Sequence record: NC_019526.1
DNA length: 64,000 bases
Strand: one strand, 5' to 3'
Position numbers and translations under genes: made by a program. This document shows positions 1 through 64,000 of the stretch, piece after piece. Within the stretch, counting starts at the first letter, position 1. The number at the start of each line of letters is the position of its first letter. The notes under the pieces are model-generated. The model saw only the letters and a list, made by a program, of their open reading frames with translations. It made no database searches and was not told the DNA's origin.

Positions 1-32
1 CCTAATAATTAGAAAAGTATCAGGTGTGATTT

Positions 33-617
33 ATGTTAAGTACTTTTAAGCGAGTTTATTTAAGAAACAACAAAATGCAAGTTCGTTTACACAAAGACGA
101 AGCTGATTCGTTTATGGCTAAAGCTATTGTTAAATCTGAATTGTACAAACGCCTTTCACCAAAAGAAAGCTCGCCATATGGATTTAATCACCCACACAGC
201 CATTATGTTGGATTGGTGTGTGAACACGCTGCTTATGTGTTGTTCACGGAACTGGAAGAAATGACTGGCATCAAATACGATATCGATCCAGCATTCCAGA
301 ATAGTAAAAGAGATGGTGAATGTGATTTAATTGTTAACAATCTACGTATAGAAGTGAAGGGTATTAAGTACAAATCATGGACTAATTATGGTCCGTGTAT
401 CAGTACAAGACAATTGAAGAATATTGAGAAAAAAGCAGATATCATTCTGTGGGTTTTGTATAATGAAAAACGTCATGAATTTTCGTTTGAAGGTTTTAAT
501 TATGTAAAAGATGTACATACTGTACCAGTTAAAATTACTGGTGCTAAAGGTAAACCACAAATTAAAAATCATCCAGTTATTGATATTATTAAACCATTAC
601 AGGAATTACCAATATGA
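33..617 (+). CDS. PD-(D/E)xK restriction-endonuclease-fold protein
   Basis: Motif GLVCEHAAY...DGECDLIVNNLRIEVKG; start may be ATG 75. Confidence 0.6.
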   Translation: MLSTFKRVYLRNNKMQVRLHKDEADSFMAKAIVKSELYKRLSPKESSPYGFNHPHSHYVGLVCEHAAYVLFTELEEMTGIKYDIDPAFQNSKRDGECDLIVNNLRIEVKGIKYKSWTNYGPCISTRQLKNIEKKADIILWVLYNEKRHEFSFEGFNYVKDVHTVPVKITGAKGKPQIKNHPVIDIIKPLQELPI

Positions 618-871
618 TCAAATGTAATATCGTAGTGTATAATTATGAGATTAATTCACGCGATGGAAGTGAAGAATTAGTGAATTCATATTTAGAATAT
701 GTAGTTAATTTTCCAGTACTGCCGGCGATTGGTTCTGAATTGAAAATTTATACATACAATGAAAAAGTATATGTAGTACTGGATATCGAATACAGAACAC
801 GTATTATGGACTGTCATAATGTTGACAATCCAAGTACCATGGAAATTAATATCATTGTTAAGGAAGTATAA
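614..871 (+). CDS. hypothetical protein, paralog of 871..1113
   Basis: Shares LP-x-x-G-(S)E-L-I ... (Y/F)-x-V-x-x-IE core with next ORF. Confidence 0.75.
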   Translation: MIKCNIVVYNYEINSRDGSEELVNSYLEYVVNFPVLPAIGSELKIYTYNEKVYVVLDIEYRTRIMDCHNVDNPSTMEINIIVKEV

Positions 872-1113
872 TGAACCAACAATACATGATTAAAGTGGTT
901 TTGTACAAAAATGATAGTCAGAGAACTAAAATCTGTTCTTCTTATGTTCAGTCATTACCAAGAACCGGAGAACTTATTACAGTACTTAATGATAAATTCA
1001 TTGTTGAACAGATTGAACACACACTGTATCCAATTAGTACAACCGATACTGTTTCGTGGAATATGAATCAACATTCTGAATCTGGTATTGCTATTATTTG
1101 TACAAAAACATAA
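871..1113 (+). CDS. hypothetical protein, paralog of 614..871
   Basis: Overlapping stop/start; shared core. Confidence 0.75.
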   Translation: MNQQYMIKVVLYKNDSQRTKICSSYVQSLPRTGELITVLNDKFIVEQIEHTLYPISTTDTVSWNMNQHSESGIAIICTKT

Positions 1114-1123
1114 GGTACCACAT

Positions 1124-1570
1124 ATGATGTATTTTATATTTCTGTACTTAATATGTCACCTTGTTATTGTTACTATTATGGACAGACATTCACACTTTGG
1201 ATATAGTTATAAAGTTGCTAAGATTTATGGTTTTAAATCTTATTTTGTTGCACTATTTTATAGTTATATACTCGATCCAAAGTATATGATATTGTCTCTT
1301 ATACTACAAAAAGAAGCAAACATTGATACTATTTCTAAAATAGAATTCGTATGTAGGCGATTTCTTAATTCAGATGATAAATGTTCAGTTAAATTTCATT
1401 CGGATAAAGTTATTTTTGTATATAACAATGTATTCACTTGTGGTATTGAATTAAATCAGGTATTAGGTATAGTTGATATTTCATGGAATCATAACGTCAT
1501 TATGCATCCAAGAACTATCAAGCTAATAGAAGCATGTAAAATAAAAGTTGACAGCGACACAAAGAGATGA
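1124..1570 (+). CDS. hypothetical membrane protein
   Basis: Hydrophobic N-terminal segments; ATG 1124 after AAGG. Confidence 0.7.
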   Translation: MMYFIFLYLICHLVIVTIMDRHSHFGYSYKVAKIYGFKSYFVALFYSYILDPKYMILSLILQKEANIDTISKIEFVCRRFLNSDDKCSVKFHSDKVIFVYNNVFTCGIELNQVLGIVDISWNHNVIMHPRTIKLIEACKIKVDSDTKR

Positions 1571-1598
1571 TATTATATAGAATAAACATATTAAAGAG

Positions 1599-2072
1599 GT
1601 GTATATGGATGCTTTAGCTACTCTATTCAAACTGAATACTTCAGAAAAAGAAGGTTATTTGAGTATCAGTGATCTTGAAAATACAAGTGAATATATTTTC
1701 AAAAATACAATCAAAATTAAAGCGAATAAGGATAAAAGCAATACACATTTCACAAAATGGATTGCTTATTGGGAGGGTGTTAATTTCGCAGTTGAAATGA
1801 CAGTTCTACCAAAAGTATTAAGTACCGGATTTGTTAAAGTTGTTATTATTGATAAAAATCTTCGACCAATTTCAGAAATTGGTGAATACCCAGTTAAGGG
1901 TACTAAAGTTTTTGGTACCATGATCAATAATAAGTTCATGATCGAAAAAACAAAAACTCAATACATCAATCAGGTTATTTCTGAATTCGAGAACAAACCT
2001 AAACCAAAAACTAAAACTGAAACCAATGAAGAATATGTTAATAAAATTAAAGAAGCATGGGGATTGAAATAA
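1599..2072 (+). CDS. hypothetical protein
   Basis: GAGG SD, GTG start (or ATG 1605). Confidence 0.75.
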   Translation: MYMDALATLFKLNTSEKEGYLSISDLENTSEYIFKNTIKIKANKDKSNTHFTKWIAYWEGVNFAVEMTVLPKVLSTGFVKVVIIDKNLRPISEIGEYPVKGTKVFGTMINNKFMIEKTKTQYINQVISEFENKPKPKTKTETNEEYVNKIKEAWGLK

Positions 2073-2521
2073 TGTTAACTTTAAAAAATCTAAAGTACTT
2101 AATTATGATTAGTATTATCCTATTCATCTCCAATGTACCTATGGATATTTTTAAATTTGGTGACACACGATTGGGTGCATTCATTGGTGTATATAGTTTA
2201 ATATTCTGCATCATAACATTTGTGGTTGCGTTTGTTATGTTCATTGAAGATATGTATGATGATAAAGACTTTTATTTCGAATTTCTCGGAAAAGATAGTT
2301 ATTCATTTATCTGGACATTCTCTATTTTACCAGCATTAATTTATGCATTCTTTATCGCAGAGGGTGGTATCGCCTATGGAGTTATGGGTATCTTCTTATT
2401 TCTTTTCTGGGAAAGAATCAGAACTATTCAAAACCGATATGCTCAAGAATATCGTGATGAAGAACTAAAAAATGAAGCAATGCGTAAGAATTATCCACCA
2501 GAAGAGGTAGAAATTAAATGA
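2072..2521 (+). CDS. hypothetical multi-pass membrane protein
   Basis: About 4 hydrophobic segments; coupled start. Confidence 0.75.
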   Translation: MLTLKNLKYLIMISIILFISNVPMDIFKFGDTRLGAFIGVYSLIFCIITFVVAFVMFIEDMYDDKDFYFEFLGKDSYSFIWTFSILPALIYAFFIAEGGIAYGVMGIFLFLFWERIRTIQNRYAQEYRDEELKNEAMRKNYPPEEVEIK

Positions 2522-8641: not shown

Positions 8642-8742
8642 ATCAAGACAAGTAGTAGCTTAATATGTTCAAGAGCAGCGAGCAAACACAGCATAATGGT
8701 ACTCGTCTGTACAGGTTGCATTCCTGTTTACTTGTCTTTGAT
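8642..8742 (+). ncRNA. tRNA-like RNA with extended acceptor stem and 19-nt anticodon loop
   Basis: D arm GCTT/GAGC, anticodon stem GCGAG/CTCGT, T arm ACAGG-TTGCATT-CCTGT; no CCA; directly after TTGACA-16-TATAAT (8608-8635). Confidence 0.6.
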
Positions 8743-9534: not shown

Positions 9535-9621
9535 ATCAAGACAAGATTAGTTCAGTAGGTAGGAACCGTTCTATGTGTATCTAAGAATAAGTTGTGGTTC
9601 GATTCCCTATCTTGTCTTGAT
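9535..9621 (+). ncRNA. tRNA-like RNA with 12-bp acceptor stem and 11-nt anticodon loop
   Basis: ATCAAGACAAGA/TCTTGTCTTGAT stem, D arm GTTC-AGTAGGTAG-GAAC, T loop GG-TTCGATT-CC; directly after TTGACA-16-TATAAT (9500-9527). Confidence 0.65.
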
Positions 9622-46462: not shown

Positions 46463-46468
46463 CAAGCT

Positions 46469-47418: not shown

Positions 47419-47507
47419 TTGACAAATCTTTACAAATCCAGGGGTTGACTTCGGTCGCCCCTTTTGTTATTATATATTCATACCACAGAGCAAGTGGTTT
47501 AGCCCAC

Positions 47508-47625
47508 AGGGTGCCGAGATGTATCTATAGTTTAATGATTTTAAGTACTGAAAAATAATTATAAAAAGTACTTGCTAGACGTGAATTCTTTTAAGAATTC
47601 ACTTGTATTTGTGATTCAGTACTGC
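47508..47625 (+). repeat. 118-bp direct repeat, copy 1
   Basis: Identical to 57395-57513 except a 1-nt indel. Confidence 0.9.
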
Positions 47626-47661
47626 TATTATATATTCATACCAATTAAGGAGATTATCCAA

Positions 47662-47820
47662 ATGAATACACAATATGTGCCGGTGATGAATATCACTATA
47701 GGAAATGGAAAAGGTATGCATCGATTCAGTACTACAAAGAGTTATACTCAGCGTACATTAGAATCATGTGCAATTACTAAATGGCAAATCAAACATTACT
47801 TCACTACGGACAAGAAATAA
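47662..47820 (+). CDS. hypothetical protein (52 aa)
   Basis: AGGAG SD; the track start lies in the promoter. Confidence 0.65.
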   Translation: MNTQYVPVMNITIGNGKGMHRFSTTKSYTQRTLESCAITKWQIKHYFTTDKK

Positions 47821-47932
47821 TGATTGTAAAAGTATTGACAACGATAATTCAGTACTGTATTATAACTGGTGTAGCGTTCGTGTTAGCAGTTGCTATAGTG
47901 TTTAGTACTGTAATTGTATTGGGGAACATATC

Positions 47933-48238
47933 ATGATTAAAAATATTGAAGCATTCGATAAAGCATATCTTTACACCAGTACTTTTCGGAATAGCGATGG
48001 CGATCCGGTTGAATTTAAAAATGTAGTACTGATCCGGCCTGGTTTTGATATTATTCATATCTGGAATTCATGGAATCAAGCGGCGGGCAATCGCTATACT
48101 ATTGATAAAGAAATTTCAATAGAAGAAGCGTTAAAACTTCCATCATTGCCGGATCGTTTATCCCTGGCTAGTCGTGTGGAACTGGTGGGTGATACCGCAC
48201 AATATATCACGCATGAGTATGAATTTAAGTACTTATAA
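47933..48238 (+). CDS. hypothetical protein
   Basis: GGGG SD. Confidence 0.7.
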   Translation: MIKNIEAFDKAYLYTSTFRNSDGDPVEFKNVVLIRPGFDIIHIWNSWNQAAGNRYTIDKEISIEEALKLPSLPDRLSLASRVELVGDTAQYITHEYEFKYL

Positions 48239-48324
48239 GTGTTGACAACATAATTCAGTACTGTATAATGTATTACATCAAAGGGGATACATAGTGTATC
48301 CCTGAATTAACAGGAGTAACCCAT

Positions 48325-48573
48325 ATGTCTAGTATCGTTATCAATGAAACCTTATTATCTGTTACTTATGACAATGACAGTGTTTTTCCGGGTAAAGATT
48401 ATGGGGACGAAATTCCCGTAAAAGTTGAACTCGATCAAAGTGTCGGTAATGCCGACGATATTAAACGCACTATGGTGGTTAAAATTGGCGATATCACTTT
48501 ATTGCCCATTGATATTGATTATATCAAGTTTATGATTGATCGTGCAAATACCATTGCCGAAACCTTCAAATAA
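48325..48573 (+). CDS. hypothetical acidic protein
   Basis: Promoter-hairpin-AGGAG cassette. Confidence 0.75.
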   Translation: MSSIVINETLLSVTYDNDSVFPGKDYGDEIPVKVELDQSVGNADDIKRTMVVKIGDITLLPIDIDYIKFMIDRANTIAETFK

Positions 48574-48656
48574 GTACTTGACAACTGGTTTCAGTACTGT
48601 ATAATGTTTATCAAAGGGGATACATAGTGTATCCCTGATTTAAAGGAGATTCTAAA

Positions 48657-48845
48657 ATGGCAGTAGTATACGGTTATATCAGCAACTATGATTTGACTTT
48701 CCGGGAAGTCGGTACTGAATTAGGTGCAAAGAATGCAGCAACGCGAAACGGCTCGACCCGCGTAGGATATCGCAGTAGTATTAATAATATGTATATTGAA
48801 ACGCATATCCGCAACGATAAAAAGGGTAAATGGGAAAAAGTGTAA
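48657..48845 (+). CDS. hypothetical protein
   Basis: Promoter-hairpin-AGGAG cassette. Confidence 0.75.
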   Translation: MAVVYGYISNYDLTFREVGTELGAKNAATRNGSTRVGYRSSINNMYIETHIRNDKKGKWEKV

Positions 48846-49235
48846 TCTAATTCCATTTACAAATCTTTACAAAACCAGTACTTGATTTAATTATTGAGTA
48901 CTGGTATTATATATTCATTGGCAGATAAGCCGCAGCCCACAGGGTGCCGAGGTGTATCTATAGTTTATTGAATTGAAGTACAGAAAAATATTTCTTGCAT
49001 AATTCATTTCTTATGTTATAATAGTAATCACATAAATTAATTGGAGTGAACAAAAATGTTATTAGATTGGCTCAATACTTTATCCCCTGCTGCTGGCCGA
49101 CGCTGGGCTATCGGTTCGTCGGTTGCCATCGTTGTAGGCGTCATTGTACTTTTAGTGATGATTTTCTAAAAAGTACTTGCTTTAATGATCCAGTACTGTA
49201 TAATGTACTTATACCAAATAACAGGAGTAAAACCG

Positions 49236-49553
49236 ATGAAAGATGTAACTTTACCAGTAGTTCAAACTAACTTTGAAAACCAATTCCTGGCCGAAGTATT
49301 CAAGATTGATAATGGCGTTGTATCAATCAATTACGGTTTCAATAGCGGCGGTTATGAAAAATTCATTTATTTCGTTACTGCCGATGGTGGATGCCTGGCA
49401 ATTGATACGGTACTGAATGAATTCAGTAAAGTAGATTTTAATGATGATAATGATCCTCAGTGGTATATTGTCGGCTATGACGTGAACTATGAAGATGAAG
49501 ATCTTTATGATGATCATACTAATCAAAAAATTGAATCCGCTTATGGGGAATAA
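49236..49553 (+). CDS. acidic hypothetical phage protein
   Basis: AGGAG SD; DPQW...VNYED...IESAYG motif. Confidence 0.75.
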   Translation: MKDVTLPVVQTNFENQFLAEVFKIDNGVVSINYGFNSGGYEKFIYFVTADGGCLAIDTVLNEFSKVDFNDDNDPQWYIVGYDVNYEDEDLYDDHTNQKIESAYGE

Positions 49554-49853
49554 AAATGATCATCGTACTATCAGAGAAAGAAAAGAAATTAATTCTTTCA
49601 GTACTGAAAGAATATCCCAGAAATATGCGGGAGCCGTTTGAAACAAATGGTGAATTCGAAGAGCATTTAAACGATATCGATTTATTGATATCCAAGATTG
49701 AATCACAATAGTGATGTACTGTAAAACGTCCTGTAATCGATTATGGGACGTTTTAAGGAATAGCACTATGATTTATTCAGTACTGTAAAAAAACGCTTGA
49801 AAATTGATTCCAGTACTGTATAGCTGCATTACTGTTTAATGTGGGGTATTAAA

Positions 49854-50069
49854 ATGAAATATGTTATGGTAGATGAAATTACTAGCACGAAACCCAGTGA
49901 TGATTATAACAAATGGCTTGCCCGTAGCAATAAATGTATTATTCCGCACGATGACCGCGTATATCATTGTTATGAATGCGGGGAGATTATACCAAATGTA
50001 CTGGATCATTCAATCTTTACATATGATGATCTTAATTACGCTCATTCAAGATGCCTTGATAAAAAATAG
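49854..50069 (+). CDS. small Cys/His protein
   Basis: CYEC...HSRC. Confidence 0.65.
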   Translation: MKYVMVDEITSTKPSDDYNKWLARSNKCIIPHDDRVYHCYECGEIIPNVLDHSIFTYDDLNYAHSRCLDKK

Positions 50070-50144
50070 TTGACAGTATCATATCAGTACTGTATAATGC
50101 TTTACATAGGAAAATTATTCTCCCCATTATCAGGAGTAAAGAAT

Positions 50145-50372
50145 ATGTTTTACATCGGTACTGTTAAAAAAAATTCAAATGTAATTGAAGCATCATTGAT
50201 TTGTACTAACAATGAAGTGGCTGGCTATGATTATGCTCAAGAACGATTCATGAAACACTATACCGGTGATGATTCAGTGTCATTCGATTTTGAACGTATC
50301 GGTGATGGTGTTACAATTATGAAATTTGAAGATCTCCCTGAAATCGATTTTGATTTTGTCGTTACACTGTAA
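50145..50372 (+). CDS. small acidic protein
   Basis: AGGAG SD. Confidence 0.7.
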   Translation: MFYIGTVKKNSNVIEASLICTNNEVAGYDYAQERFMKHYTGDDSVSFDFERIGDGVTIMKFEDLPEIDFDFVVTL

Positions 50373-50471
50373 AAAAAGTACTTGCATAATTCTTTCAGTA
50401 CTGTATACTGTACTTATACCAAACAAAAGCAAATGGAATCAGTACTGATTCCCTGTAAAGGAGATAGACCA

Positions 50472-50723
50472 ATGTCAGATCGTATCACTCGCAAAATGGT
50501 AGCAGATAAAGTTGCTGGGCTGAATCTTGCTATTGACCGTCGTGGATTGCCTGAAAAATATCAGGTAGTACTGGAAGATGGCAAATTCAATATTGAATTA
50601 CAGCCGTCTCATGTTTATACTAAACCAACGACAGTACAAGGGAATTTAAGTACACGTGAAGCATATCTTTACCTCAAAGGTATGTTTGAGATCCTTCTCA
50701 ATAATGTACCATATAAAGATTAA
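50472..50723 (+). CDS. hypothetical protein
   Basis: Promoter-hairpin-AGGAG cassette. Confidence 0.75.
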   Translation: MSDRITRKMVADKVAGLNLAIDRRGLPEKYQVVLEDGKFNIELQPSHVYTKPTTVQGNLSTREAYLYLKGMFEILLNNVPYKD

Positions 50724-50726
50724 AGA

Positions 50727-50757
50727 AAAAGGGGAGACAATGAGTCTCCCTTTTTTG
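50727..50757. terminator. bidirectional intrinsic terminator
   Basis: GGGAGAC-aatga-GTCTCCC flanked by A and T runs. Confidence 0.75.
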
Positions 50758-50949
50758 TATTCAGTACTAAATTATATAGATACATTTATGCACCCTGTGG
50801 GTTAGTAGCTTGTTCTGCTTTATGTAGTAATTATATGATAAAGCTGGTGGCTTGTCAACACTTATTTTAAAATAAAAAGTACTGAATAGTACTTGCAAAA
50901 AGTATTCAGTACTGTATAATGTTTGTATTGAGATTAAGGAGTTCTTACT

Positions 50950-51507
50950 ATGTTAATCAAAATGTATCACGGTTCTAATAATTTTGATCATCGCTGGGGA
51001 TATCTGGGTGGAAAACCTGGCAATTTTCATATGGGTTTTGGACTATATCTAACTAACTCTTATCGCTGGGCTGATAATTATGGGCGACGTCATTATGAGT
51101 TAGATTTAGATATTTGTAGTACTGGTGCCGCACATAATGTATGGATTCCTACTAAACACTTTATGGAATTCATAAGAGTATATTGTACTAAAAAGTTTTA
51201 TACAATGTGCTGTAAAGAATTTAAAGACCGTGAATCTTTGAATGTAGAACGCGTTGAATTGCTTATTATCAATATGGAAAGGCACGTTACGAAAATCGCT
51301 AAACCATTTGCTGAATTCGTCGCTGCCTGGGGTTGTACGCATAGCATTGAAATATCCGGTAACTATGGTGGTGTTTGCGTGCGGCTTTATGATTTCAGTA
51401 TTATAAAGAATTGTATCATAAGCCAGGAAACGCAGGATTTTTATTATCCAGATGAATTGACAAGATATCCTCAAAAAACTTGTATTAATGATTCAGTACT
51501 GATATAA
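50950..51507 (+). CDS. ADP-ribosyltransferase-fold protein (H-Y type)
   Basis: MYHGS ... MGFGLYLT ... WADNYG. Confidence 0.55.
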   Translation: MLIKMYHGSNNFDHRWGYLGGKPGNFHMGFGLYLTNSYRWADNYGRRHYELDLDICSTGAAHNVWIPTKHFMEFIRVYCTKKFYTMCCKEFKDRESLNVERVELLIINMERHVTKIAKPFAEFVAAWGCTHSIEISGNYGGVCVRLYDFSIIKNCIISQETQDFYYPDELTRYPQKTCINDSVLI

Positions 51508-51752
51508 TGAATTAAATTAATCAGGAGGAATTATCTTAAATGAATAACCGTCAATTGATGATCGATGCATCTCGTTTTCGTTCAAAAGAAGAAAAGAGAA
51601 GTTGCATTAAATGGGTTTTGTCAACTTTCATTATTGGATTACTTATTGTTGCTTTTGTTTATAGTTAGTACTTGACAATATAATCCAGTACTGTATAATG
51701 TTTATCAAAGGGAATGAATTATTCATTCCCGATTAATCAAAGGAGTTTTGCC

Positions 51753-51977
51753 ATGATCTATATTATCAAAGTATCCCCGACCGTAGGTAAATCAGAAGTT
51801 GTAGCTGTTATCACTTCCCTGGAAGCGAAAGATCTTCATACCCCGTTTAATGTATGGGTGGAGGATAATTTCGGACAATTCAGTACTGCTGAATATATCG
51901 AACAATTCGCTGTCCCGGACACTGGTAAAATCAAAGTGGATCGTGTCCTGGATTTTGATAACAGTAATTACTTTTAA
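51753..51977 (+). CDS. hypothetical protein
   Basis: Promoter-hairpin-AGGAG cassette. Confidence 0.7.
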   Translation: MIYIIKVSPTVGKSEVVAVITSLEAKDLHTPFNVWVEDNFGQFSTAEYIEQFAVPDTGKIKVDRVLDFDNSNYF

Positions 51978-52063
51978 AAACGTTTGACAACTGATTTCAG
52001 TACTGTATAATGTTTATCAAAGGGAATGAATTATTCATTCCCGATTAATCAAAGGGGTTTATC

Positions 52064-52210
52064 ATGAAAGAGTATATCTTTGAAGTAACTTTCACATTTG
52101 GCCCGCACCAACTGATCCGGTCTTCTGGCTACAACCGCGAACAAGCATTCAGCAACCTTCGCCGTATGTACCCCAATGTCGTGACCTGGGTCAAGTGTGA
52201 AGAAGCTTAA
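52064..52210 (+). CDS. hypothetical protein (48 aa)
   Basis: Duplicate cassette, AGGGG SD. Confidence 0.65.
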   Translation: MKEYIFEVTFTFGPHQLIRSSGYNREQAFSNLRRMYPNVVTWVKCEEA

Positions 52211-52290
52211 AATAATTAGTCAGTACTATTGACAACGGGTGATAGTACTGCTATAATTATTTTAACTTATACGGAATGGAGTTAAAACAA

Positions 52291-52527
52291 ATGTTCAGTG
52301 TCAGCAAACAAGGCGACAAATTTCTGGTTCAATACCATCATTTTGATCTGGTATACACTCAGCCAGATTGTGTATTCAGTACTCAGGAAGGTGCCGAAAA
52401 GCACAAAAAAGCCTTGATCGAAAATAGCAACAGTGGTACATTAGATTTCATCCAACAGTACTGGAATGAATCTAAGCTGGTGGACGGTTATTCCAACACA
52501 GTTTATTATGTAGGTATCACTGATTAA
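52291..52527 (+). CDS. hypothetical protein
   Basis: GGAG SD. Confidence 0.7.
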   Translation: MFSVSKQGDKFLVQYHHFDLVYTQPDCVFSTQEGAEKHKKALIENSNSGTLDFIQQYWNESKLVDGYSNTVYYVGITD

Positions 52528-52629
52528 TCGGGAGTACTGTTAATGTATATGCCAATTATCATACCGTTAGCAGTACTGTTAATCGCCGCCGTTATCTGCG
52601 AACAATATCATTTGTTAGGAATGTAAACT

Positions 52630-52800
52630 ATGATTCAATGTGAATTGTCAGTACTGATCACGCTGTTCTATATGTTGGGGCAAAAGAAACAAGATATTTC
52701 TGGTGATAATGCATTATTGTATCAATCATTAGACCAATGGCAACGATCTGAATTAAGCAATGCATGGGCGAAAGGTTACAACGATAGTACTGCAAAATAA
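52630..52800 (+). CDS. hypothetical protein (56 aa)
   Basis: AGGA SD. Confidence 0.55.
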   Translation: MIQCELSVLITLFYMLGQKKQDISGDNALLYQSLDQWQRSELSNAWAKGYNDSTAK

Positions 52801-52987
52801 TTTAAAAAAGGGGTTGACTTACGCCAGCCCTTTTGTTATCATTAGTACATAGCAAGAACAATGCTCAAGCCCACAGGGTGCGGAGGTGTATCTATAGTTT
52901 ATGTTGGTCTGAATCATTAATTTTCTTGACAATTGGTTTAGTACTGGATATAATAGCCGCCATTGAATACAGGAGGATTTTAAAAAA

Positions 52988-53254
52988 ATGGCCTATCATA
53001 CACCACATAGACATTTCATTGATAAACGCGGTATGGCTTTTAAAGCAATGAGTGACAATCGTAACACACAAATGTACTTTAAAGATATGACGTTAGAAGA
53101 AGCTATTGAAGCTGTAAGGAATGATCGTAAGCTTTCCAAGAAAGTTGCATCAGTACTTAATGCTTTTTGGTTTGAACGTACTACCAACAAAGAATACAAA
53201 GAAAAGATGATTGCACTTGGTAAAGTAGTAAGAGAAGAAAAATTATATCTTTAA
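52988..53254 (+). CDS. hypothetical basic protein
   Basis: AGGAGG SD. Confidence 0.75.
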   Translation: MAYHTPHRHFIDKRGMAFKAMSDNRNTQMYFKDMTLEEAIEAVRNDRKLSKKVASVLNAFWFERTTNKEYKEKMIALGKVVREEKLYL

Positions 53255-53505
53255 GTACTTGACTATGTGATTCAGTACTGCTATTATATATTCATACCAA
53301 TTAAGGAGATAGACCAAATGAAACAAGCTAAATTTAATTCAGAAATTAAAGCAGCAAAAGCACACAAAGTACAGTTAGTAGTACTGGTTATTGTATCAAT
53401 CTTTTTGCTGTGCAACATCGGCTAAAATAATTATTACAGTACTATTGACAACCAACGATAGTACTGGTATAATTACTTTACCAAATAAAAAAGGAGTAAC
53501 CAAAA

Positions 53506-53781
53506 ATGCGGATTAAACTTACCAGTGATGAGATTCATTCAGTACTGACTACCAATATGCAGGACTGGAAAAAGTACGCTGATATCGAAGAAGTCCAGGA
53601 ACTCAATGATGATTTGAGTGTAGATGAAATTATCACTATTTGCTCATCTCAATTCTTTGATGATATCAATGATGAAGAGCAAGATGTATTTGATATCATG
53701 GAAAAACATTTTATTGCGTATGATGTTTTCCCGTATACTCGCCAGGCTTATATTCTTATTCACAACATTTATAACAAATAA
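53506..53781 (+). CDS. highly acidic small protein
   Basis: About 20 D/E vs 7 K/R in 91 aa; AGGAG SD. Confidence 0.75.
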   Translation: MRIKLTSDEIHSVLTTNMQDWKKYADIEEVQELNDDLSVDEIITICSSQFFDDINDEEQDVFDIMEKHFIAYDVFPYTRQAYILIHNIYNK

Positions 53782-53793
53782 GGAATAATAATC

Positions 53794-54159
53794 ATGGAAA
53801 AAGAATTTAAAATCAAATACAATATCAGTACCGATGGCGGTTTTGAAGTACCAGAAGAAGATCAAGAACGTCTTAATGATGTTATTATGATTGACATTTC
53901 AAATAAAATCATTCAAGGCTACCGCGAAGGTGAATTGTGTGAATCGTTGATGGATCAATTCGATGAAGTGGAAACGTTTTATCGTGGCTGGTGGAGTATC
54001 GAAGAAGTTCACAAAGTACACGAATACCGTGTATTCTGGATTAATGGCGTTAATGATATCGAAGATATCATTGTAAAAGAAAGTAGTGAATCCGCCGCCA
54101 TTCAGTACTTTAAAGATCACTACCCCAACAAACGTTATCACCATTTAGAAAAAATTTAA
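53794..54159 (+). CDS. acidic hypothetical protein
   Basis: AAGGA SD. Confidence 0.75.
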   Translation: MEKEFKIKYNISTDGGFEVPEEDQERLNDVIMIDISNKIIQGYREGELCESLMDQFDEVETFYRGWWSIEEVHKVHEYRVFWINGVNDIEDIIVKESSESAAIQYFKDHYPNKRYHHLEKI

Positions 54160-54246
54160 AAAGTAATTGACAACATAATCCAGTACTGATATATTAATAC
54201 GCATAGGGGCAAACAACTTGCCCCACTAAACAAAAGGAACTACCAA

Positions 54247-54603
54247 ATGATTACTAAATTCTACGCTACTCGTGAACAGGCTCGGATCGTCGCTCGTGAA
54301 GAAGGCGAAACCTTCAAAGATATGGGTAAAGATTCCCCTGCTGGTCAACGCTGGGCAGTACTGTTCCGCGAGGTCAAAGACCTGGTAGAAAACGCTAAAG
54401 CCGTTGAAATGAACGTTCCCACCAAAGAAGATAAAGAACTGACTGATGCCCTCGCTGCTGCATTCTCCGCGATGGATAAAGCCGCAGCGGTAGTACTGAA
54501 AGTACCGGAATTTGTTACCAGAAAAGTGCATTCAGTACTACAAAATAAATTCAACGGTAAACAGGTTCAAGTGTTTACTAAACGTAAAATTCCGGTCATG
54601 TAA
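54247..54603 (+). CDS. hypothetical phage protein with host-optimal codons
   Basis: FYATREQAR...KDMG...GQRWAV. Confidence 0.8.
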   Translation: MITKFYATREQARIVAREEGETFKDMGKDSPAGQRWAVLFREVKDLVENAKAVEMNVPTKEDKELTDALAAAFSAMDKAAAVVLKVPEFVTRKVHSVLQNKFNGKQVQVFTKRKIPVM

Positions 54604-54707
54604 AATCTGACTATTACAGTACTAACAAAGGGGCTTCAATGCCCCTTTAAACGTCCTGTAAGCCATTCTAAGAGGTTTTACATGAAAAGGTACAACTACA
54701 CAAAGGA

Positions 54708-54929
54708 GTGATGAAAGTTCATTATAATGCCCCGCAACGCATTATAGATAGAGCCATTGAACTAGCCAATCAATACCTAGCTGGTGGATTAACTCCCAGG
54801 AAGTTAAGCAACGGGAAGTTATATGTAATCAACGTTGATACTAATAATCGTATAGTAATCAAAGGTGAAAGCATATCACTGTATGAACATCAGCAGTATA
54901 ACAAGAAAGTAAAAAATATTAGTAGATAA
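54708..54929 (+). CDS. hypothetical protein (possible ParE/RelE-like small fold, unverified)
   Basis: AGGAG SD. Confidence 0.6.
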   Translation: MMKVHYNAPQRIIDRAIELANQYLAGGLTPRKLSNGKLYVINVDTNNRIVIKGESISLYEHQQYNKKVKNISR

Positions 54930-55008
54930 GTGTTGACAACTGATTTCAGTACTGCCATAATGTATACATACAAGGCAATACCGCCTAATAACATAGGAGT
55001 AACTGAAA

Positions 55009-55431
55009 ATGAAAAAATCCACTAAAATTATCTTAGGTGTATTTGTTGTTCCGGCAGTAGCCTTTTTTACTTGTGCTATGATTTTTGGTGATGCTTCTCG
55101 GGTTGCCGCAAAAATCGAAAAAGAAAAACAAGTCCAGGTGGAAGTCAAGAAAGAAGAAAAGAAAAATTATAACACTGTATGGGAAGCAATTTGCCATACC
55201 AGTAATGGTAAAAGGATCTCCATCCTTACAGCGATGAATAATGGAAAATCAATCGTCGGAAACGAATATATGGAAGTTACTTCCAGTACTGGTAAAGAAT
55301 TTGTAATGACGAACTATAATAACAATAACGTTGCAATTGTTACACAAGATTTTAAAGGTAATGCAGTACTTGAATATCATACGGAATATGAAGTAATATT
55401 TGCAAAATGCACATTTGAATGGGGTGCATAA
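55009..55431 (+). CDS. membrane-anchored/secreted protein
   Basis: N-terminal hydrophobic helix; two Cys in the C-terminal domain. Confidence 0.75.
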   Translation: MKKSTKIILGVFVVPAVAFFTCAMIFGDASRVAAKIEKEKQVQVEVKKEEKKNYNTVWEAICHTSNGKRISILTAMNNGKSIVGNEYMEVTSSTGKEFVMTNYNNNNVAIVTQDFKGNAVLEYHTEYEVIFAKCTFEWGA

Positions 55432-55614
55432 AAATAAACATAATAAACAAAAAAGGGGGTTGACACAGGTCAGCCCTTTTGCTATTATTAATATCAAGAA
55501 AACAAGCTAACCCACAGGGTGCATAAATGTATCTATAATTTATTAAAGAATTTTAGTACTTGACAACGTAGTACAGCAGTACTAAAATATCTACATACAA
55601 AGGAGATTACCAAA

Positions 55615-56199
55615 ATGAACAAACATCTTAAAGTACTGAATAAATGTAAATCCAATACCGAAATGTTACTGTACTGTTACAAAAATTTAATTAAACTCGG
55701 GAGAGGTTCATCCAGAACAGTATTTTTGTTAACAAAAAACAAAGTACTGAAAGTTGCTCATAACCATATTGGCAACCAACAGAATACAGCAGAAATCACT
55801 GCATGGTTGTATATTGATTATGACCGCTATTATAATAAACGCTTTTTCGCTAAAGTGTTCCCTGATATGTCGCATTTTAAAGATGTATACATAGTACAGG
55901 AGTACTGCGACAATATCAGTACTAAAGAAGCGAAGCCATACATTGAACATTACTTGACACCTAGCACTATTGAAAATGAGCGTGCTAAACGCTTCCACAC
56001 GGCGTTAAGAGATGTAGACAATACCCTTAACTATAAAACGCTGGTGGACTTAAACGTGGGCAATATAGGCCGTTCTGTAAGGGGTGCAATAAAACTCCGT
56101 GATTATGGATTATCTGAACATATTGCTAAACAGTATAGAGAAGCCCGCGACCAGTACCACCAACTCAAAAGTATTAGTAACATAAGTATTGATTTATAA
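55615..56199 (+). CDS. minimal protein kinase
   Basis: LGRGSSRTVF, VLKVA, QNTAE, IVQEYC, DLNVGNIG, IKLRDYGL. Confidence 0.8.
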   Translation: MNKHLKVLNKCKSNTEMLLYCYKNLIKLGRGSSRTVFLLTKNKVLKVAHNHIGNQQNTAEITAWLYIDYDRYYNKRFFAKVFPDMSHFKDVYIVQEYCDNISTKEAKPYIEHYLTPSTIENERAKRFHTALRDVDNTLNYKTLVDLNVGNIGRSVRGAIKLRDYGLSEHIAKQYREARDQYHQLKSISNISIDL

Positions 56200-56264
56200 T
56201 TTCAGTACTGCTATAGTACTTTCACAGGGGAGATAATCTCCCCAATCACAAAGGAGATTTTACC

Positions 56265-56627
56265 ATGAGTACTAAACCATTTGTAACCACTCGTTCTAAT
56301 CTGACTGAGATCTATGTACATGGTGGATATGAGGAAACGTATGTCACTGGTATTATGGTAGAATTCAATCAGGGTTATCGGTTTATGTTGGTAGATTCAG
56401 AAATCTATCATACACAACAAGATAAACATGGTTATGTCAATAAGTACTCCACCGATGAAGTACTGAAACGCCTGGATAACAAAATTAAACAAATTCAAAA
56501 ACATCTTGACAACGGCGGAAAACTTAATCATTTACTTTGGGATAGCTTAGATCCCTGCTACGGTTCCGATGCATATGGTAAAAGCCGTGACACTGCAATG
56601 AAAGTACTTAAAGATTATTTCTTTTAA
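56265..56627 (+). CDS. hypothetical protein
   Basis: Promoter-hairpin-AGGAG cassette. Confidence 0.75.
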   Translation: MSTKPFVTTRSNLTEIYVHGGYEETYVTGIMVEFNQGYRFMLVDSEIYHTQQDKHGYVNKYSTDEVLKRLDNKIKQIQKHLDNGGKLNHLLWDSLDPCYGSDAYGKSRDTAMKVLKDYFF

Positions 56628-56707
56628 GTATTGACAAGTAATTCCAGTACTGGCATAATGTATTTCAAGGAGGTAATAACACCTCCTACCTTCAAGGAGT
56701 AGTGACT

Positions 56708-56944
56708 ATGAATACTAAAGAAATGCTTTGTGAGTTCGCCAGTAACAATCTTGGCAACGCCGCGTTCATTGATGGTTTTAATTATGTAGCAACTCGTGAT
56801 CAAGAAGGTAAAGTATTCGTTAAAGATCGTATGGGCTTTTCTATCCAGGTTCAATCCGGTACTGCAAGCCATATCGACGGCATGAATGTATGGGCTGCTA
56901 CTATCCCCGGTGATGGAACATATCATTTCCGTATCGTAAAATAA
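56708..56944 (+). CDS. hypothetical protein
   Basis: Promoter-hairpin-AGGAG cassette. Confidence 0.75.
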   Translation: MNTKEMLCEFASNNLGNAAFIDGFNYVATRDQEGKVFVKDRMGFSIQVQSGTASHIDGMNVWAATIPGDGTYHFRIVK

Positions 56945-57033
56945 TTTAAAAAGTACTGGACAATACAATCCAGTACTGTATAATGTTTTGCATAGGGAGA
57001 GATAATCTCTCCCACTAAAGGAGAATACCGAAA

Positions 57034-57315
57034 ATGATTACTGGTCACATTACTAACTATGCAAAACGCCGCGATGTAGAAATAGAAGTACTGAAAGCAG
57101 GCGAAGTTGACGATGACGCTCAGGTATGGTTCTACACCGCAGACAATGATTGTGAACCAGTACTGATGTACCTGATTAATAATGATGGTTCTCTTACTTA
57201 TCGTAGCAAACTGATGAAGTCCCTGGAAGATATGCCAGCACATATCAATAATAAAGAAGTACTGAAACGCGTAATCTGCTACATCTCAGACCAGCACAAA
57301 GCGGATATGATGTAA
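57034..57315 (+). CDS. hypothetical protein
   Basis: Promoter-hairpin-AGGAG cassette. Confidence 0.75.
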   Translation: MITGHITNYAKRRDVEIEVLKAGEVDDDAQVWFYTADNDCEPVLMYLINNDGSLTYRSKLMKSLEDMPAHINNKEVLKRVICYISDQHKADMM

Positions 57316-57394
57316 TCTTTACAAATATGGGGGTTGACTAATGTCAGCCCTTTTGGTATTATATATTCAATCCAGCGAAATGGTCTAACCCTCA

Positions 57395-57513
57395 AGGGTG
57401 CCGAGATGTATCTATAGTTTAATGATTTTGAAGTACTGAAAAATAATTATAAAAAGTACTTGCTAGACGTGAATTCTTTTAAGAATTCACTTGTATTTGT
57501 GATTCAGTACTGC
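57395..57513 (+). repeat. 118-bp direct repeat, copy 2
   Basis: Matches 47508-47625. Confidence 0.9.
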
Positions 57514-57597
57514 CATAATATATCCATACAAGGGAAACATAGTGTTTCCCGATAATCCACAGCAATAGTGCTGGTGGATGAACCAGGAGTAATAACC

Positions 57598-57894
57598 ATG
57601 CAAGACAAATCAATTCATGTTCAAGTAGTTTCAAGCCGTGGCTATGACGATGTAGTACTGGATATCATGGTTAAAGATCTGCGGGACTATGCAATCATTG
57701 CACGTCATATCATGGTTAACTCCATTTGTATCAGTACTGGTGCTGATATGGAAGAAAACCGCTTACATATAGAAGAACATCTATACAAAGCACGCATGAA
57801 TGACAGCAGTGTATTCATCATTGAAGGTGCCGAGGGTAAAGAGTATACTGTATACCTTCGCCAGTACCAGGAAGTAGAAAAAGAAGAAGATTAA
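57598..57894 (+). CDS. acidic hypothetical protein
   Basis: AGGAG SD; the track start lies in a Chi-containing 5' hairpin. Confidence 0.75.
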   Translation: MQDKSIHVQVVSSRGYDDVVLDIMVKDLRDYAIIARHIMVNSICISTGADMEENRLHIEEHLYKARMNDSSVFIIEGAEGKEYTVYLRQYQEVEKEED

Positions 57895-57985
57895 TTTATA
57901 AAAAGTACTTGCTTTAATAGTTCAGTACTGTATACTGTTTATCAAGGGGAAGCAATAGTGCCTCCCCACTCATAGGAGATACACC

Positions 57986-58384
57986 ATGTTTACTATCACT
58001 TCTCGACAGGATGTTCTGTACGTTGCTAAAACTTTTGGTCTGGAAGCACTCGATCATATCATTCGCAACAGTACAATGAATGCTGATGCAAATGGGATTA
58101 TCATTGATACTCGGGCATGGGCCGCCAATGAAGTCATTGCCATCGAGCATGTTAACGATGGTAACAATGTCTATGAAGTGGATGCATGTTTCAATGCTGT
58201 TAATGTAGCAGGTATGTATATCACTGGTATTGATGATATCACTATCATCCGCTCCGGTATGGGTAACTTCTCCATGCCTTTACGTTCAGCAATGGAAAGA
58301 AAAGAGATCAGTACAGAACAATGTGCAAATATAATCAATGAGATTACCGCACGTAATGAAGCTGCTGCTATCCTTTACCCGTAG
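57986..58384 (+). CDS. hypothetical protein
   Basis: Promoter-hairpin-AGGAG cassette. Confidence 0.75.
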   Translation: MFTITSRQDVLYVAKTFGLEALDHIIRNSTMNADANGIIIDTRAWAANEVIAIEHVNDGNNVYEVDACFNAVNVAGMYITGIDDITIIRSGMGNFSMPLRSAMERKEISTEQCANIINEITARNEAAAILYP

Positions 58385-58404
58385 TAGTTCAGTACAGTAC
58401 TGTA

Positions 58405-58437
58405 AGCCCATAGGATAAACCCTGTGGGCTTTTTCTT
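58405..58437 (+). terminator. intrinsic terminator closing the early module
   Basis: AGCCCATAGG-ataaac-CCTGTGGGCT then T run. Confidence 0.75.
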
Positions 58438-58686
58438 TATGGGTAATATGATTGGGTAGGTTATGGTGTAAGTACTGTCAGAATTGATTACAGGAGGATA
58501 GCGTAAAAATTGATTAATTGATTTCAGTACTGAACTGTTATTGAGAAAAAATATTAGTCAAAAAATAATTGACTTAGAAAATATTTAAACCAATACCTTA
58601 TACTGTATGAAATAGTTTCGGACTGTGATTATATATTTGACTAAGTAAAGTGGTATTAGGCTTAGCACTTTTATATAGTATTACAG

Positions 58687-58787
58687 TACTGAACAATTTA
58701 TATCATTCTGTGCACTATTCTGTACTGGAACAATTTATATCATTCTGTGCACTATTCTGTACTGAACAATTTATACTATTCTGTACT
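58687..58787 (+). repeat. about 2.5 tandem copies of a 36-37 bp unit
   Basis: TACTG(G)AACAATTTATATCATTCTGTGCACTATTCTG. Confidence 0.85.
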
Positions 58788-59168
58788 ACACTAATTGAAA
58801 TTAATGGTTATAAAACCCTTGCCTCTTCAATAAAAGTGTGCTATGATGTAATTAATATGTGTGTTTCTATTATGTGAAATTATAGGTACAAAATGAAAAC
58901 CAGACCGTATCACACTGAAATAAAAGAAGCTTTTTATAATGGTAATCCATTAAGAAGTATTGAATTAGTTTTGCTTCGTAATTTAGGTACACCATCGCAA
59001 GAAGAGTGTGTTCAAGAATATATAAATCGTTTGATATAATGTAAAGTACAAAGCAAAAGGCATTTTTATCATTACTTAAATCGTAATACATAAAGAATTA
59101 GATGATATTTAATGCTGTACTAATATCTTGACTCTTTTTTTCTACAATTGTATATAACAGGAATAGTA

Positions 59169-62476: not shown

Positions 62477-62633
62477 ATTCTGACTATTATTACAGTACTG
62501 TACAGTACAATATGTATTTAAGTTCTTTTATGAATTTAAAAACGAGTTCAATAGACAAAGACGTGTATGAAAGTATATTGGGTTGTTTGAATCATAGTAT
62601 TCATAAATTATATAAATTAAAAGGTACGTTGGG

Positions 62634-62816
62634 ATGATTGATAATTACCAACAAATAAAAACACTATCTGAGTATTATAAAATTGATACTAATTATATAG
62701 TACGGATGCCTGTAGAGTTAGATGAATCTTTACATAAGTGGAGATATTTTTCAGTATTAAATAATTTGAATTTTGTCATTAATAGTTTATATGAATTACA
62801 AGGTAAATTACCATGA
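62634..62816 (+). CDS. small protein ending QGKLP
   Basis: Shared terminus with 63563..63781. Confidence 0.65.
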   Translation: MIDNYQQIKTLSEYYKIDTNYIVRMPVELDESLHKWRYFSVLNNLNFVINSLYELQGKLP

Positions 62817-63160
62817 AATATAAACGATGTGATGATGGATATCTGGCTGCCAGGTATTACAGTAAATTTGTATCTACAACTAATAAAGATGATCTGCTAT
62901 TACTTATGTTAGTAGGTACAATTAAACAAGAAATGGCGGCTGAAAGATATATCAACACGTTAATACATAAAATGGTACTTAAACACAGGCTGGTTAAAAT
63001 TAGAACTATTGGTGGTTATGAACCTTATAAGTTTGGTGTATTTTATCTTGACAATACTAATTTAGTTGCTTCTGATTCTATTATAATTTGTGAGTCCATT
63101 GAAAAAGCGGTTCAGTACTGTAAAAATAATAATTATAGATTGATTGGTACAGAGGTATGA
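62813..63160 (+). CDS. hypothetical protein
   Basis: ATGA overlap. Confidence 0.75.
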   Translation: MKYKRCDDGYLAARYYSKFVSTTNKDDLLLLMLVGTIKQEMAAERYINTLIHKMVLKHRLVKIRTIGGYEPYKFGVFYLDNTNLVASDSIIICESIEKAVQYCKNNNYRLIGTEV

Positions 63161-63163
63161 ATT

Positions 63164-63415
63164 ATGATGAGTTTAAAATTTTATGACCATTTACCAAAAA
63201 GTATTAAATTCAGTAATATACAATATTATACATTAGAAGATTGGGAAATGCATTATCGAAAGATACTCGGTTTTTCTTTGGGATTTGAAGAAACTGAGTA
63301 CCAGGAAATACATTATAATTATTATATTGAAATATTAAAATGTATGATACATAAAGATTATGAAATTTTAATTTCCAGATATATAGTGACGAGTAAAAAT
63401 GGATCAAGAAACTAA
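63164..63415 (+). CDS. hypothetical protein
   Basis: GAGG SD. Confidence 0.7.
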   Translation: MMSLKFYDHLPKSIKFSNIQYYTLEDWEMHYRKILGFSLGFEETEYQEIHYNYYIEILKCMIHKDYEILISRYIVTSKNGSRN

Positions 63416-63566
63416 GAAGAAGTTAACAGAACTTATTGAAGCATCTATTAATGCTGAGGGTGCTTTCTTTGAGCACTACGATAAGTACGATAAAAAAGGA
63501 CGAGTATTGTGGGAGAAGCGTAATAGTACCAGGAAGGAGTTGGATGAATTTATTTCTAAATTGTGA
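63399..63566 (+). CDS. hypothetical protein (55 aa)
   Basis: Fills gap, coupled to neighbours. Confidence 0.55.
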   Translation: MDQETKKKLTELIEASINAEGAFFEHYDKYDKKGRVLWEKRNSTRKELDEFISKL

Positions 63567-63781
63567 GGAAATTAGTGAATAGTCCAAATGGTCGTGCATC
63601 TATATCACAACTATATTTGTATAATCTTAAATTATCTTATATTATAAAATCAATAAAAACTAAAAATAACTTCATTGGTTTGCCTAATTATGTAAGAGAA
63701 ATGGAGATAGATTCATTTGTTAAGGATATGATAGAAATATATAAAATTCAAGGTAAGTTACCACCGTTTGATGAGTTGTAA
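63563..63781 (+). CDS. small protein with QGKLP motif
   Basis: GTGA overlap. Confidence 0.6.
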   Translation: MRKLVNSPNGRASISQLYLYNLKLSYIIKSIKTKNNFIGLPNYVREMEIDSFVKDMIEIYKIQGKLPPFDEL

Positions 63782-63882
63782 TACTATCCACTTCATACCC
63801 ACCGTGTGTCTTTTTAAACACTTGACTTCCAGTCAAATCTGTGTTATTGTTATTATTGTAATAATCAAAATGGTACAATATA

Positions 63883-64000
63883 ATGACCAAAAGTGAATAC
63901 TATTCTGTACTGAATATTCAGGAAGCGTGTAAAGGTTTATACTTTACTCCTTATATTGAAGTGATGCGTTCTGTATTTAAATTACTACAGAAGGAATTTT
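63883..64000 (+). CDS. MTK-x-EY-x-SV family paralog 4 (runs off window)
   Basis: MTKSEYYSVLNIQEACKGLYFTPYIEVMRSVF. Confidence 0.8.
   Translation, partial: MTKSEYYSVLNIQEACKGLYFTPYIEVMRSVFKLLQKEF

Follow-up and report, generated by a model that had tools for sequence, protein, structure and literature searches.

HIP1 (GCGATCGC), a word of cyanobacterial genomes that is also present in cyanobacterial phages, is one of the described systems to which the element reported here can be compared, the hexamer AGTACT of the Klebsiella phage vB_KleM_RaK2 (genus Alcyoneusvirus, NC_019526.1/JQ513383.1, 345,809 bp). We analyzed a stretch of 64,000 nucleotides of this genome (record positions 186001-250000, 100% identity), called the window below; coordinates are those of the window unless the record is named. 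Like CAGTACTG, the preferred form of AGTACT, HIP1 is an 8-bp palindrome with a genome-wide excess of an order of magnitude or more. Both words occur in intergenic DNA and, in all frames, within genes, both are lineage-specific with variants, and the function of both is open to debate. HIP1 differs in belonging to cellular genomes and in embedding known methyltransferase targets (CGATCG, GATC), whereas AGTACT is carried by a lytic jumbo phage with word-poor hosts, takes fixed operator-like positions in promoters and has its hot zone, with a three-fold density, in the terminal repeat.

Other systems share part of these features. DNA uptake sequences (DUS/USS) and Chi are also genome-wide words (for AGTACT, about 1 per 0.4 kb) which shape peptides, are conserved in density and make discrimination of self from foreign DNA conceivable, but they are asymmetric and have known readers, the competence receptor and RecBCD, while AGTACT is palindromic and viral. 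The KorA/KorB operators of RK2 and the TF1 sites in the early promoters of the SPO1 terminal redundancy are sets in which many promoters share one palindromic operator, placed over core elements; in SPO1, a phage protein with a preference for phage DNA binds the early promoters of the terminal repeat. Such sets comprise about a dozen sites and have an identified protein, whereas RaK2 has 937 sites, mostly in genes. Finally, the SRL/SRR heptamer arrays of T7 and the hexamer clusters of P1 pac adjoin terminal repeats or packaging sites, and RaK2 likewise has clusters of a short word directly beside its terminal-repeat junctions. It differs from T7 and P1 in that the arrayed word also pervades the whole genome, and in that its relative fENko-Kae01 lacks the right array. 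What is new with respect to HIP1, DUS/Chi and operator sets is a word that is viral, palindromic and tied to a terminal repeat and early promoters. The excess of AGTACT in these phages is apparently undescribed: it is not mentioned in the papers on RaK2, CBB, PA5oct and Sharanji, and nothing relevant came up when AGTACT or CAGTACTG was searched in full texts together with phage terms.

Enrichment of AGTACT and its place in genes

The window contains 289 AGTACT (positions 1-64000), against 15.3 ± 4.2 (maximum 26) in 100 dinucleotide-preserving shuffles. An earlier note on this DNA had counted at least 22 copies between 38701 and 40295, which is the exact number, and had extrapolated from this one window to the whole genome. 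The extrapolation holds, as the genome carries 937 copies where about 117 are expected at order 0 and 177 under a second-order Markov model. The word was the sole outlier among the 64 six-base palindromes of the window (13.4x the order-0 expectation; 1.9x for the runner-up), and GTAC is contained in all of the twenty most enriched 8-mers of the genome. With 247 copies against 2.9 expected, CAGTACTG shows an 85-fold excess in the whole genome; like a HIP-type word it is thus a perfect 8-bp palindrome at least ten-fold in excess. The earlier note had also described CAGTACTG as the usual form of the site. It is the commonest one, with 102 of the 289 window sites, but this 35% is a plurality and not a majority. 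Only 3 AGTACT were present in a 50-kb sample of E. coli (0.06/kb), and measured against this one sample the phage is about 45-fold richer.

The expectation for a phage is that short palindromes are purged; RaK2 follows it in general, and this makes the exception of AGTACT conspicuous. In the window, CTTAAG is absent and ACTAGT present once, with 21.5 copies expected for each. AGTACT, far from the depletion expected of an avoided restriction site, is enriched 8-13x. Both in the genome and in the window, CTTAAG, CTGCAG, GAGCTC, AGCGCT, GCATGC, CGTACG and the non-palindromic GACATC are at or near zero. This avoidance of hexamers suggests heavy past restriction pressure, despite the three DNA-modification enzymes that the phage encodes.

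Preferences around the hexamer were graded. C precedes it in 47-52% of the sites and G follows it in 51-59% (52% and 59% in the window), G at -1 (the rarest base there, 4-7%) and C at +1 are disfavored, and a weak bias towards T at -2/-3 and A at +2/+3 leads to the extended optimum, or weak consensus, TTCAGTACTGAA. The ±1 flanks hold 0.44 bits of information, the TTC half-flank is enriched 11x, and the preferences of the two half-sites are roughly independent. Dyad symmetry together with graded, roughly independent half-site flanks is typical of sites of a dimeric binding protein. Also, variants at the outer positions were raised (GGTACT/AGTACC 3.3x, TGTACT/AGTACA 2.4x) and those at the inner positions were not, which points to a degenerate DGTACH site rather than to decay products of AGTACT. 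One-step precursors were not depleted (AATACT/AGTATT 1.14x and ATTACT/AGTAAT 1.02x, with 0.87x for the median hexamer).

All 141 annotated genes of the window lie on the + strand, and the majority are small and without known function. Wholly within coding sequences lie 174 of the 289 sites, where synonymous-codon shuffling within genes left 54.1 ± 6.1 (maximum 74; z ≈ 20) and shuffling of codon order 20.6 ± 4.4. As the earlier note had proposed, all reading frames are used, with 80 sites read as AGT-ACT (Ser-Thr), 79 as xxA-GTA-CTx (x-Val-Leu) and 15 as xAG-TAC-Txx (Gln-Tyr-x), and the excess survives the codon-preserving shuffle that it had suggested as a check. The corresponding dipeptides are the three most over-represented ones (ST 2.1x, VL 1.9x, QY 1.8x), and AGTACT spells 80 of the 137 Ser-Thr pairs. 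The presence of the word in coding sequence thus exceeds, as for a HIP-like word, what codon usage and protein sequence allow, and this DNA word is strong enough to shape the encoded proteome. An artifact of codon usage, protein sequence or repeats is ruled out by the two shuffles and by a uniform enrichment in unique genes over 346 kb.

The tRNA set of the phage includes tRNA-Ser(GCT), which reads AGY, and tRNA-Thr(TGT) (L006, 28529-28617 and 32045-32119; record 178.5-182.1 kb), that is, tRNAs for the two amino acids of the in-frame reading AGT-ACT. ARAGORN found one tRNA-Met that is absent from the list of the RefSeq record, and did not detect the pseudo-tRNAs annotated at 8649-8735 and 9541-9616.

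The background tier of sites (1-38700) has about 3 sites/kb without preferred spacing, and coding and non-coding densities are equal there (3.2/kb and 2.9/kb in 1-38600). Over the genome the background is about 2.3/kb in all gene classes (2.3/kb for replication, 2.1/kb for structural genes), on either strand. Gaps between background sites are exponential, or Poisson-like (coefficient of variation 0.98), with no favored spacing, and a genome-wide test for helical phasing found none outside the repeat. Selection for even spacing is ruled out by these exponential gaps; the largest ones lie in five tail-spike genes (record 322.7-333.6 kb), which with 7 sites in 10.8 kb have a lower density (0.65/kb) and are probably recent acquisitions. 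Genes for homing or HNH endonucleases are not site-poor (2.5/kb). A hot zone at record positions of about 220-245 kb reaches 6-8 sites/kb.

The terminal repeat, its junctions and its promoters

The direct terminal repeat predicted by PhageTerm in the phage Muenster (1-20030) aligns to window positions 38815-58662 with 92-95% identity, so the hot zone corresponds to a 19.8-kb terminal repeat. This inferred repeat (38815-58662, + strand, 19,848 bp) contains 146 AGTACT, 61 of them as CAGTACTG, at a density of 7.4/kb overall, 12.0/kb in non-coding DNA and 4.1/kb in genes. Repeats of relatives have similar lengths, of 19.7 kb in fENko-Kae01, 20.7 kb in Sharanji and 22.5 kb in CBB. In PA5oct, the genes of the terminal repeat are strongly transcribed early (PMC7318152), and by analogy the repeat of RaK2 is probably an early region.

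Arrays of the word stand just outside both inferred junctions. On the left, five AGTACT (38707-38802; starts at 38707, 38747, 38757, 38777 and 38797) are spaced by 40, 10, 20 and 20 bp, all multiples of 10 bp, and the array ends 13 bp before the repeat. On the right, four GTAC-core sites (58685-58790; one CAGTACTG, two CTGTACTG and one CTGTACTA) form an array with a tandem unit of about 37 bp, starting 23 bp outside the repeat. The left end of fENko-Kae01 has a pair of sites at a distance of 10 bp from each other, 28-43 bp inwards of the terminus.

The repeat and its ends have other features. The right boundaries given by PhageTerm in two genera have a similar context, GGCT/TAGC (window ~58662) and GCCT/TAGC (fENko-Kae01 19736; L207 position 437), the slash marking the boundary, and this may be a conserved cutting site. 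The host Chi sequence (GCTGGTGG) occurs eight times on the + strand of the repeat, with about 0.05 expected (43850, 45898, 50843, 52476, 53987, 54780, 56040 and 57570; four genic, four intergenic), and once on the - strand, at 44994. Genome-wide there are 15 Chi on the + strand (0.8 expected) and 3 on the - strand (0.5 expected). The orientation of Chi in the repeat is such that RecBCD entering from the right end would be attenuated.

The most regular placement of the word was found in promoters. A scan of the + strand made independently of AGTACT, in which near-consensus means at least 11 of 12 matches to TTGACA and TATAAT, found 22 such promoters in the repeat, and a consensus scan found 12 perfect TTGACA-N16/17-TATAAT promoters in these 20 kb. 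The spacer carries AGTACT in 19 of the 22, and in 17 of these the word ends 1-2 nt before the -10 hexamer, where chance would give about 0.1; the G that follows the spacer site completes the TG of an extended -10. In 7 of them, a further AGTAC directly precedes the first T of the -35 and is fused with it. Pairs of sites exactly 20 bp apart number 18 and are confined to the repeat zone. Sixteen of them are promoters of the form AGTAC-TTGxxx-N9-CAGTAC-TG-(n)-TATAAT, which make up a σ70-type early promoter family between 40268 and 57940 on the + strand. Two members match the consensus at 12 of 12 positions, one at 41479-41511 (+ strand), in which AGTACT is fused to TTGACA and, after 9 nt, CAGTACTG abuts TATAAT, and a second at 48573-48605 (+ strand). 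Junctions of AGTACTG with a -10-like hexamer number 36 in the repeat. When the family is compared, TTGAC, CAGTACTG and the -10 are invariant and the remainder of the spacer is variable. Of the 47 promoter-like hits found outside the repeat, only 4 contain the word. The fixed promoter positions reported in the earlier note are thus real, and, as in an operator set, a dyad-symmetric site overlaps core promoter elements in many promoters.

The word also occupies the apex of hairpins in 5' leaders. One, at 42437-42460 (+ strand), has CAGTACTG at its apex, and similar hairpins lie at 45358-45379, 46246-46265 and 50435-50452; other leader hairpins of the same class are without the word. An Rfam scan of the window gave no match to an RNA family.

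A second class of repeat promoters is free of AGTACT (47425-47485, 52794-52854, 55440-55500 and 57314-57374) and has a GC-rich hairpin (GGGG-TTGAC...CCCC-TTTTG) over the -35 and the spacer; these may be combined terminators and promoters. A repeated element, CTTTACAAATCTTTACAAA, is situated upstream of several repeat promoters (39832-39871, 40817-40856 and 48840-48879) and could be an UP element or the binding site of another factor. Also, the 19-bp Fur-box consensus, with at most 3 mismatches allowed, has 5 matches in 39598-40974 (0.13 expected), all within the first 2.2 kb of the repeat and often directly followed by TTTACAGTACTGAA. Judged by their sequence, they may be sites that bind or titrate the host Fur.

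Conservation and turnover in related phages

Sites diverge about half as much as their surroundings. In comparison with OU509535.1, which is 96-98% identical, site positions differ by 1.65% and other positions by 3.05%, and 94.5% of the sites are intact against 87% of control hexamers. This reduction includes third codon positions, which diverge by 2.1% in sites and 4.9% elsewhere in the OU509535.1 comparison (p = 0.025), and by 2.7% and 5.7% in the K64-1 comparison (p = 0.039). Non-coding sites are constrained with respect to OU509535.1 (2.0% vs 3.9%).

At larger distance, the E. coli Asteriusvirus TH47 has 186 and 128 AGTACT per 50 kb (17 expected), 49 and 30 CAGTACTG per 50 kb (0.5 expected), and a hot zone of its own. 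In the genes that can be aligned between RaK2 and TH47 (69.5% identity), 18 sites are shared, 41 are specific to RaK2 and 36 to TH47, a positional retention of 30% against 16% for control hexamers. As only 30% of positions are retained, it is the density that is conserved and not the individual positions. The core likewise occurs in fENko-Kae01 and nine genomes of IMG/VR (345-371 kb), the nine having 2-7 sites/kb each and several of them AAGTACTT ahead of CAGTACTG; the word is thus shared by a lineage and has variants in related lineages, another property of HIP-like words. When the two-site promoter pattern was scanned for across the collection, only genomes of about 350 kb, or fragments of such genomes, were hit more than once. 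On sequence grounds, AGTACT is a clade hallmark of RaK2-like enterobacterial jumbo phages, with a flank preference that depends on the lineage. The view of the earlier note that the word is a DNA-level signal is therefore supported by the shuffles, by a divergence of about half the background even at third codon positions, by a core common to several genera and by the avoidance of other palindromes.

The excess of AGTACT is absent in environmental relatives with 60-65% identity in the capsid protein. Near the capsid gene of such relatives (IMG/VR L059, L066, L072, L047 and L081) other palindromes are iterated, such as CCAATTGG (10, 8 and 6 copies; 0.2-0.4 expected) and GCGGCCGC (6 copies; 0.06 expected), and likewise GGTACC/TGGTACCA and CAGCTG. 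In a few of these relatives, iterated palindromes (CCAATTGG, GCGGCCGC, GGTACC and CAGCTG) survive correction for multiple tests. Phages of this group may more widely have the habit of iterating a palindrome specific to their lineage.

Candidate readers and possible functions

AGTACT is enriched independently of coding, diverges less than its surroundings, is kept in the clade while its positions turn over, and takes fixed positions in promoters. The dyad, the graded flanks, the enrichment of outer variants, the pairing at two helical turns, the left array in multiples of 10 bp and the synonymous constraint fit a site under selection that is read by a symmetric, probably dimeric, factor. As our best explanation, which we hold tentatively and with somewhat less than even confidence, we propose that AGTACT, with CAGTACTG as optimum, represents selected recognition sites of a two-fold-symmetric phage factor, serving at once as self tag, as early operators and as nucleation points at the junctions. 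We infer binding, its timing and its function as follows. With about 2.3 sites/kb in almost random placement, the site would be a "self" tag and would concentrate the factor about 45-fold on phage DNA, given the 0.06 sites/kb of the E. coli sample. In the repeat, where the density is tripled, a bound dimer would overlap contacts of RNA polymerase, as one site abuts the -35 and the other, 20 bp or two helical turns away, covers -20 to -14, with the TG of the extended -10. Occupancy of the promoter sites could then shut off or time early σ70 transcription, and the junction arrays might nucleate larger complexes, possibly for genome-end processing.

Several points weigh against this explanation. 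If hundreds of sites within genes were strongly bound, transcription and replication could be impeded, and the placement in promoters may partly be sequence economy, as CAGTAC-TG shares its TG with the extended -10. The constraint on non-coding sites was not seen in the K64-1 comparison (5.6% vs 5.1%). The boundaries of the RaK2 repeat and its early timing are deduced from relatives, by sequence, and the association of arrays with repeat junctions is suggestive only, because the right repeat boundary of fENko-Kae01, when examined, showed no site array. The main weakness concerns the factor itself: Pfam and PHROGs scans of 39 repeat-encoded and about 70 other proteins, boundary-adjacent and upstream ones included, found no helix-turn-helix, ribbon-helix-helix, TetR-type or other DNA-binding domain, so that, in contrast to an operator set, no cognate DNA-binding protein was identifiable among these ~110 proteins. 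Two candidates were rejected. ORF325 (40563-40790), annotated in Muenster as similar to sigma factors, has homologues confined to Alcyoneusvirus, while the motif spans genera. ORF327 (41541-42191), which is the most conserved repeat-encoded protein, is kept across the clade and has no Pfam or PDB match, has homologues in rv5-like contigs of about 137 kb without AGTACT excess (5 copies vs 6.2 expected).

Other proteins of the window were also noted. ORF354 (54711-54929) is a stand-alone ParE-like toxin domain (E = 1.9e-10); operators of the YefM/Phd type are TGTACA sites, and a toxin-antitoxin operator was rejected because ORF354 is alone, with no recognizable antitoxin. ORF356 (55615-56199) is a weak protein-kinase-like protein. 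ORF332 (44247-44747; 166 aa) has a weak match to the H-NS N-terminal oligomerization domain (E = 1.7e-4, which misses the Pfam cutoff), and a segment at its C-terminal end is similar to the DNA-binding region of H-NS; it may be a phage mimic or antagonist of H-NS for a genome of 32% GC. ORF290 (25210-25890) contains a Serratia-type non-specific DNA/RNA endonuclease domain (E = 8e-37), which leads one to ask how the DNA of the phage itself is spared.

Among the other explanations, the word may be the target of a phage methyltransferase or of a Mom-like enzyme, its modification state (for instance that of fully modified DNA on injection as opposed to DNA just replicated) regulating early promoters and end processing. 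RaK2 does encode three modification enzymes (the C5 methyltransferase ORF194, the PF05869 Dam-family ORF447 and the Mom-family ORF149), type II methyltransferases typically have targets with a short and strict palindromic core, and hexamer clusters flanking a cutting site recall P1 pac, where the methylation state of Dam sites regulates processing. However, modification alone leaves the 8- to 85-fold enrichment inside genes unexplained, the flank preferences extend past a typical methyltransferase site, the deamination products AGTATT/AATACT are undepleted at 1.14x, and CAGTA does not match the consensus S-A-S-N-Y of Mu Mom. The original RaK2 paper reports a DNA that resists most restriction enzymes, but the 5-methylcytosine reported there is in CpG context (PMC3622015), and AGTACT has no CpG; overall we consider this explanation possible but doubtful. 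The word could also be a cis signal for DNA transactions, either a Chi-like hotspot for the recombination-dependent replication, of the T4 type, of this phage, a nicking or priming site, or a terminase recognition element favoring phage over host DNA. The density peaks in the terminal repeat, the part that has to recombine end to end, arrays lie 13-23 bp from both inferred boundaries and sites lie at the left terminus of fENko-Kae01, eight co-oriented host Chi accompany them in the repeat, a palindrome can function in either orientation, and the phage encodes gp46/47, UvsX, UvsW, a RecB-like exonuclease and a type II topoisomerase. Such a signal would not explain the fixed -35/-10 positions, and the boundary arrays are not universal. 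To our knowledge, no sequence-specific recombination hotspot of this kind exists in T4-like phages, and AGTACT, being its own reverse complement, cannot show the orientation bias of a Chi-like signal, which the true Chi of the repeat does show. We regard this explanation as unlikely.

A functionless molecular drive, in which biased repair or gene conversion spreads the word (compare very-short-patch repair; such drive was proposed for HIP1 and DNA uptake sequences), would account for the Poisson-like placement outside the repeat, the high turnover between genera, the lower density in the probably recent tail-spike genes, and the presence of the word wherever constraints permit, at hairpin apices, in promoter spacers and in ST or VL codon pairs. 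Against this, one-mismatch precursors are undepleted, which excludes drive of the very-short-patch type, and outer-position variants are enriched; homing endonuclease genes are not poorer in sites. Drive also gives no reason for the three-fold non-coding excess in the repeat, the exact 20-bp pairs of the promoters or the left array. Since undepleted neighbor words, fixed operator-like positions and graded flanks all argue against pure drive, we judge it quite unlikely. On these data, the positive selection claimed in the earlier note cannot formally be told apart from molecular drive. Of the functions that the note had listed (a condensing protein, a modification or nicking target, a decoy array), the decoy array found no support. 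Action at the level of RNA, with CAGUACUG as structure, ribonuclease site or binding site, appears very improbable. As the word is palindromic, every transcript contains CAGUACUG whichever strand is transcribed, independently of gene orientation, and four leader hairpins have the site at their apex. But the sites fused to the -35 and the extragenic arrays lie upstream of transcription starts, an RNA signal does not need dyad symmetry, and sister hairpins do without the word. Lastly, the host nucleoid-occlusion factor SlmA could bind the sites, so that the phage genome would block host division or titrate SlmA. The SlmA-binding sequence GTGAGTACTCAC, a 12-bp palindrome, shares the AGTACT core with the phage sites, and also T2 and A11, but the SlmA half-site needs G1, T2, a purine at 3, A4, G5 and a pyrimidine at 6 (PMC3020112). 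The phage prefers T1 and C3, has G at -1 as its rarest base, and only 1 of its 937 sites fits GTRAGYRCTYAC. These published flank requirements largely rule out SlmA as the cognate factor, no homologue of SlmA was found among the phage-encoded proteins, and this explanation is hardly credible.

Returning to a symmetric phage factor, a bolder version, which we offer as speculative and rather doubtful, is that of a viral "self-DNA barcode". A phage protein would tell its own AT-rich, unmodified-looking DNA from that of the host by the ~45-fold difference in density, and would double as a shut-off of early promoters. Such a barcode might spare phage DNA from the nuclease ORF290 of the phage itself, or steer recombination or packaging, as an equivalent of Chi or DNA uptake sequences that is encoded by a virus. 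The barcode would have changed in related lineages, to AAGTACTT and possibly, in more distant relatives, to CCAATTGG, GCGGCCGC or GGTACC.

Thus, RaK2 purges most palindromes and keeps one at 8- to 85-fold excess, bending its own protein sequences, and this word stands in nearly every early promoter and beside the terminal repeat. On the practical side, AGTACT is a simple sequence marker of the clade, and unmodified DNA of these phages is predicted to be cut very frequently by ScaI, RsaI and TatI. Phages of 345-371 kb that infect Klebsiella, E. coli and relatives, a group studied for therapy, have the feature in common. The purpose of highly iterated palindromes is a long-standing question, for which these phages offer a rare tractable case, as members of Asteriusvirus grow on E. 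coli K-12. With the cognate factor in hand, jumbo phages without a phage nucleus would be seen to have a new system of regulation or self-recognition.

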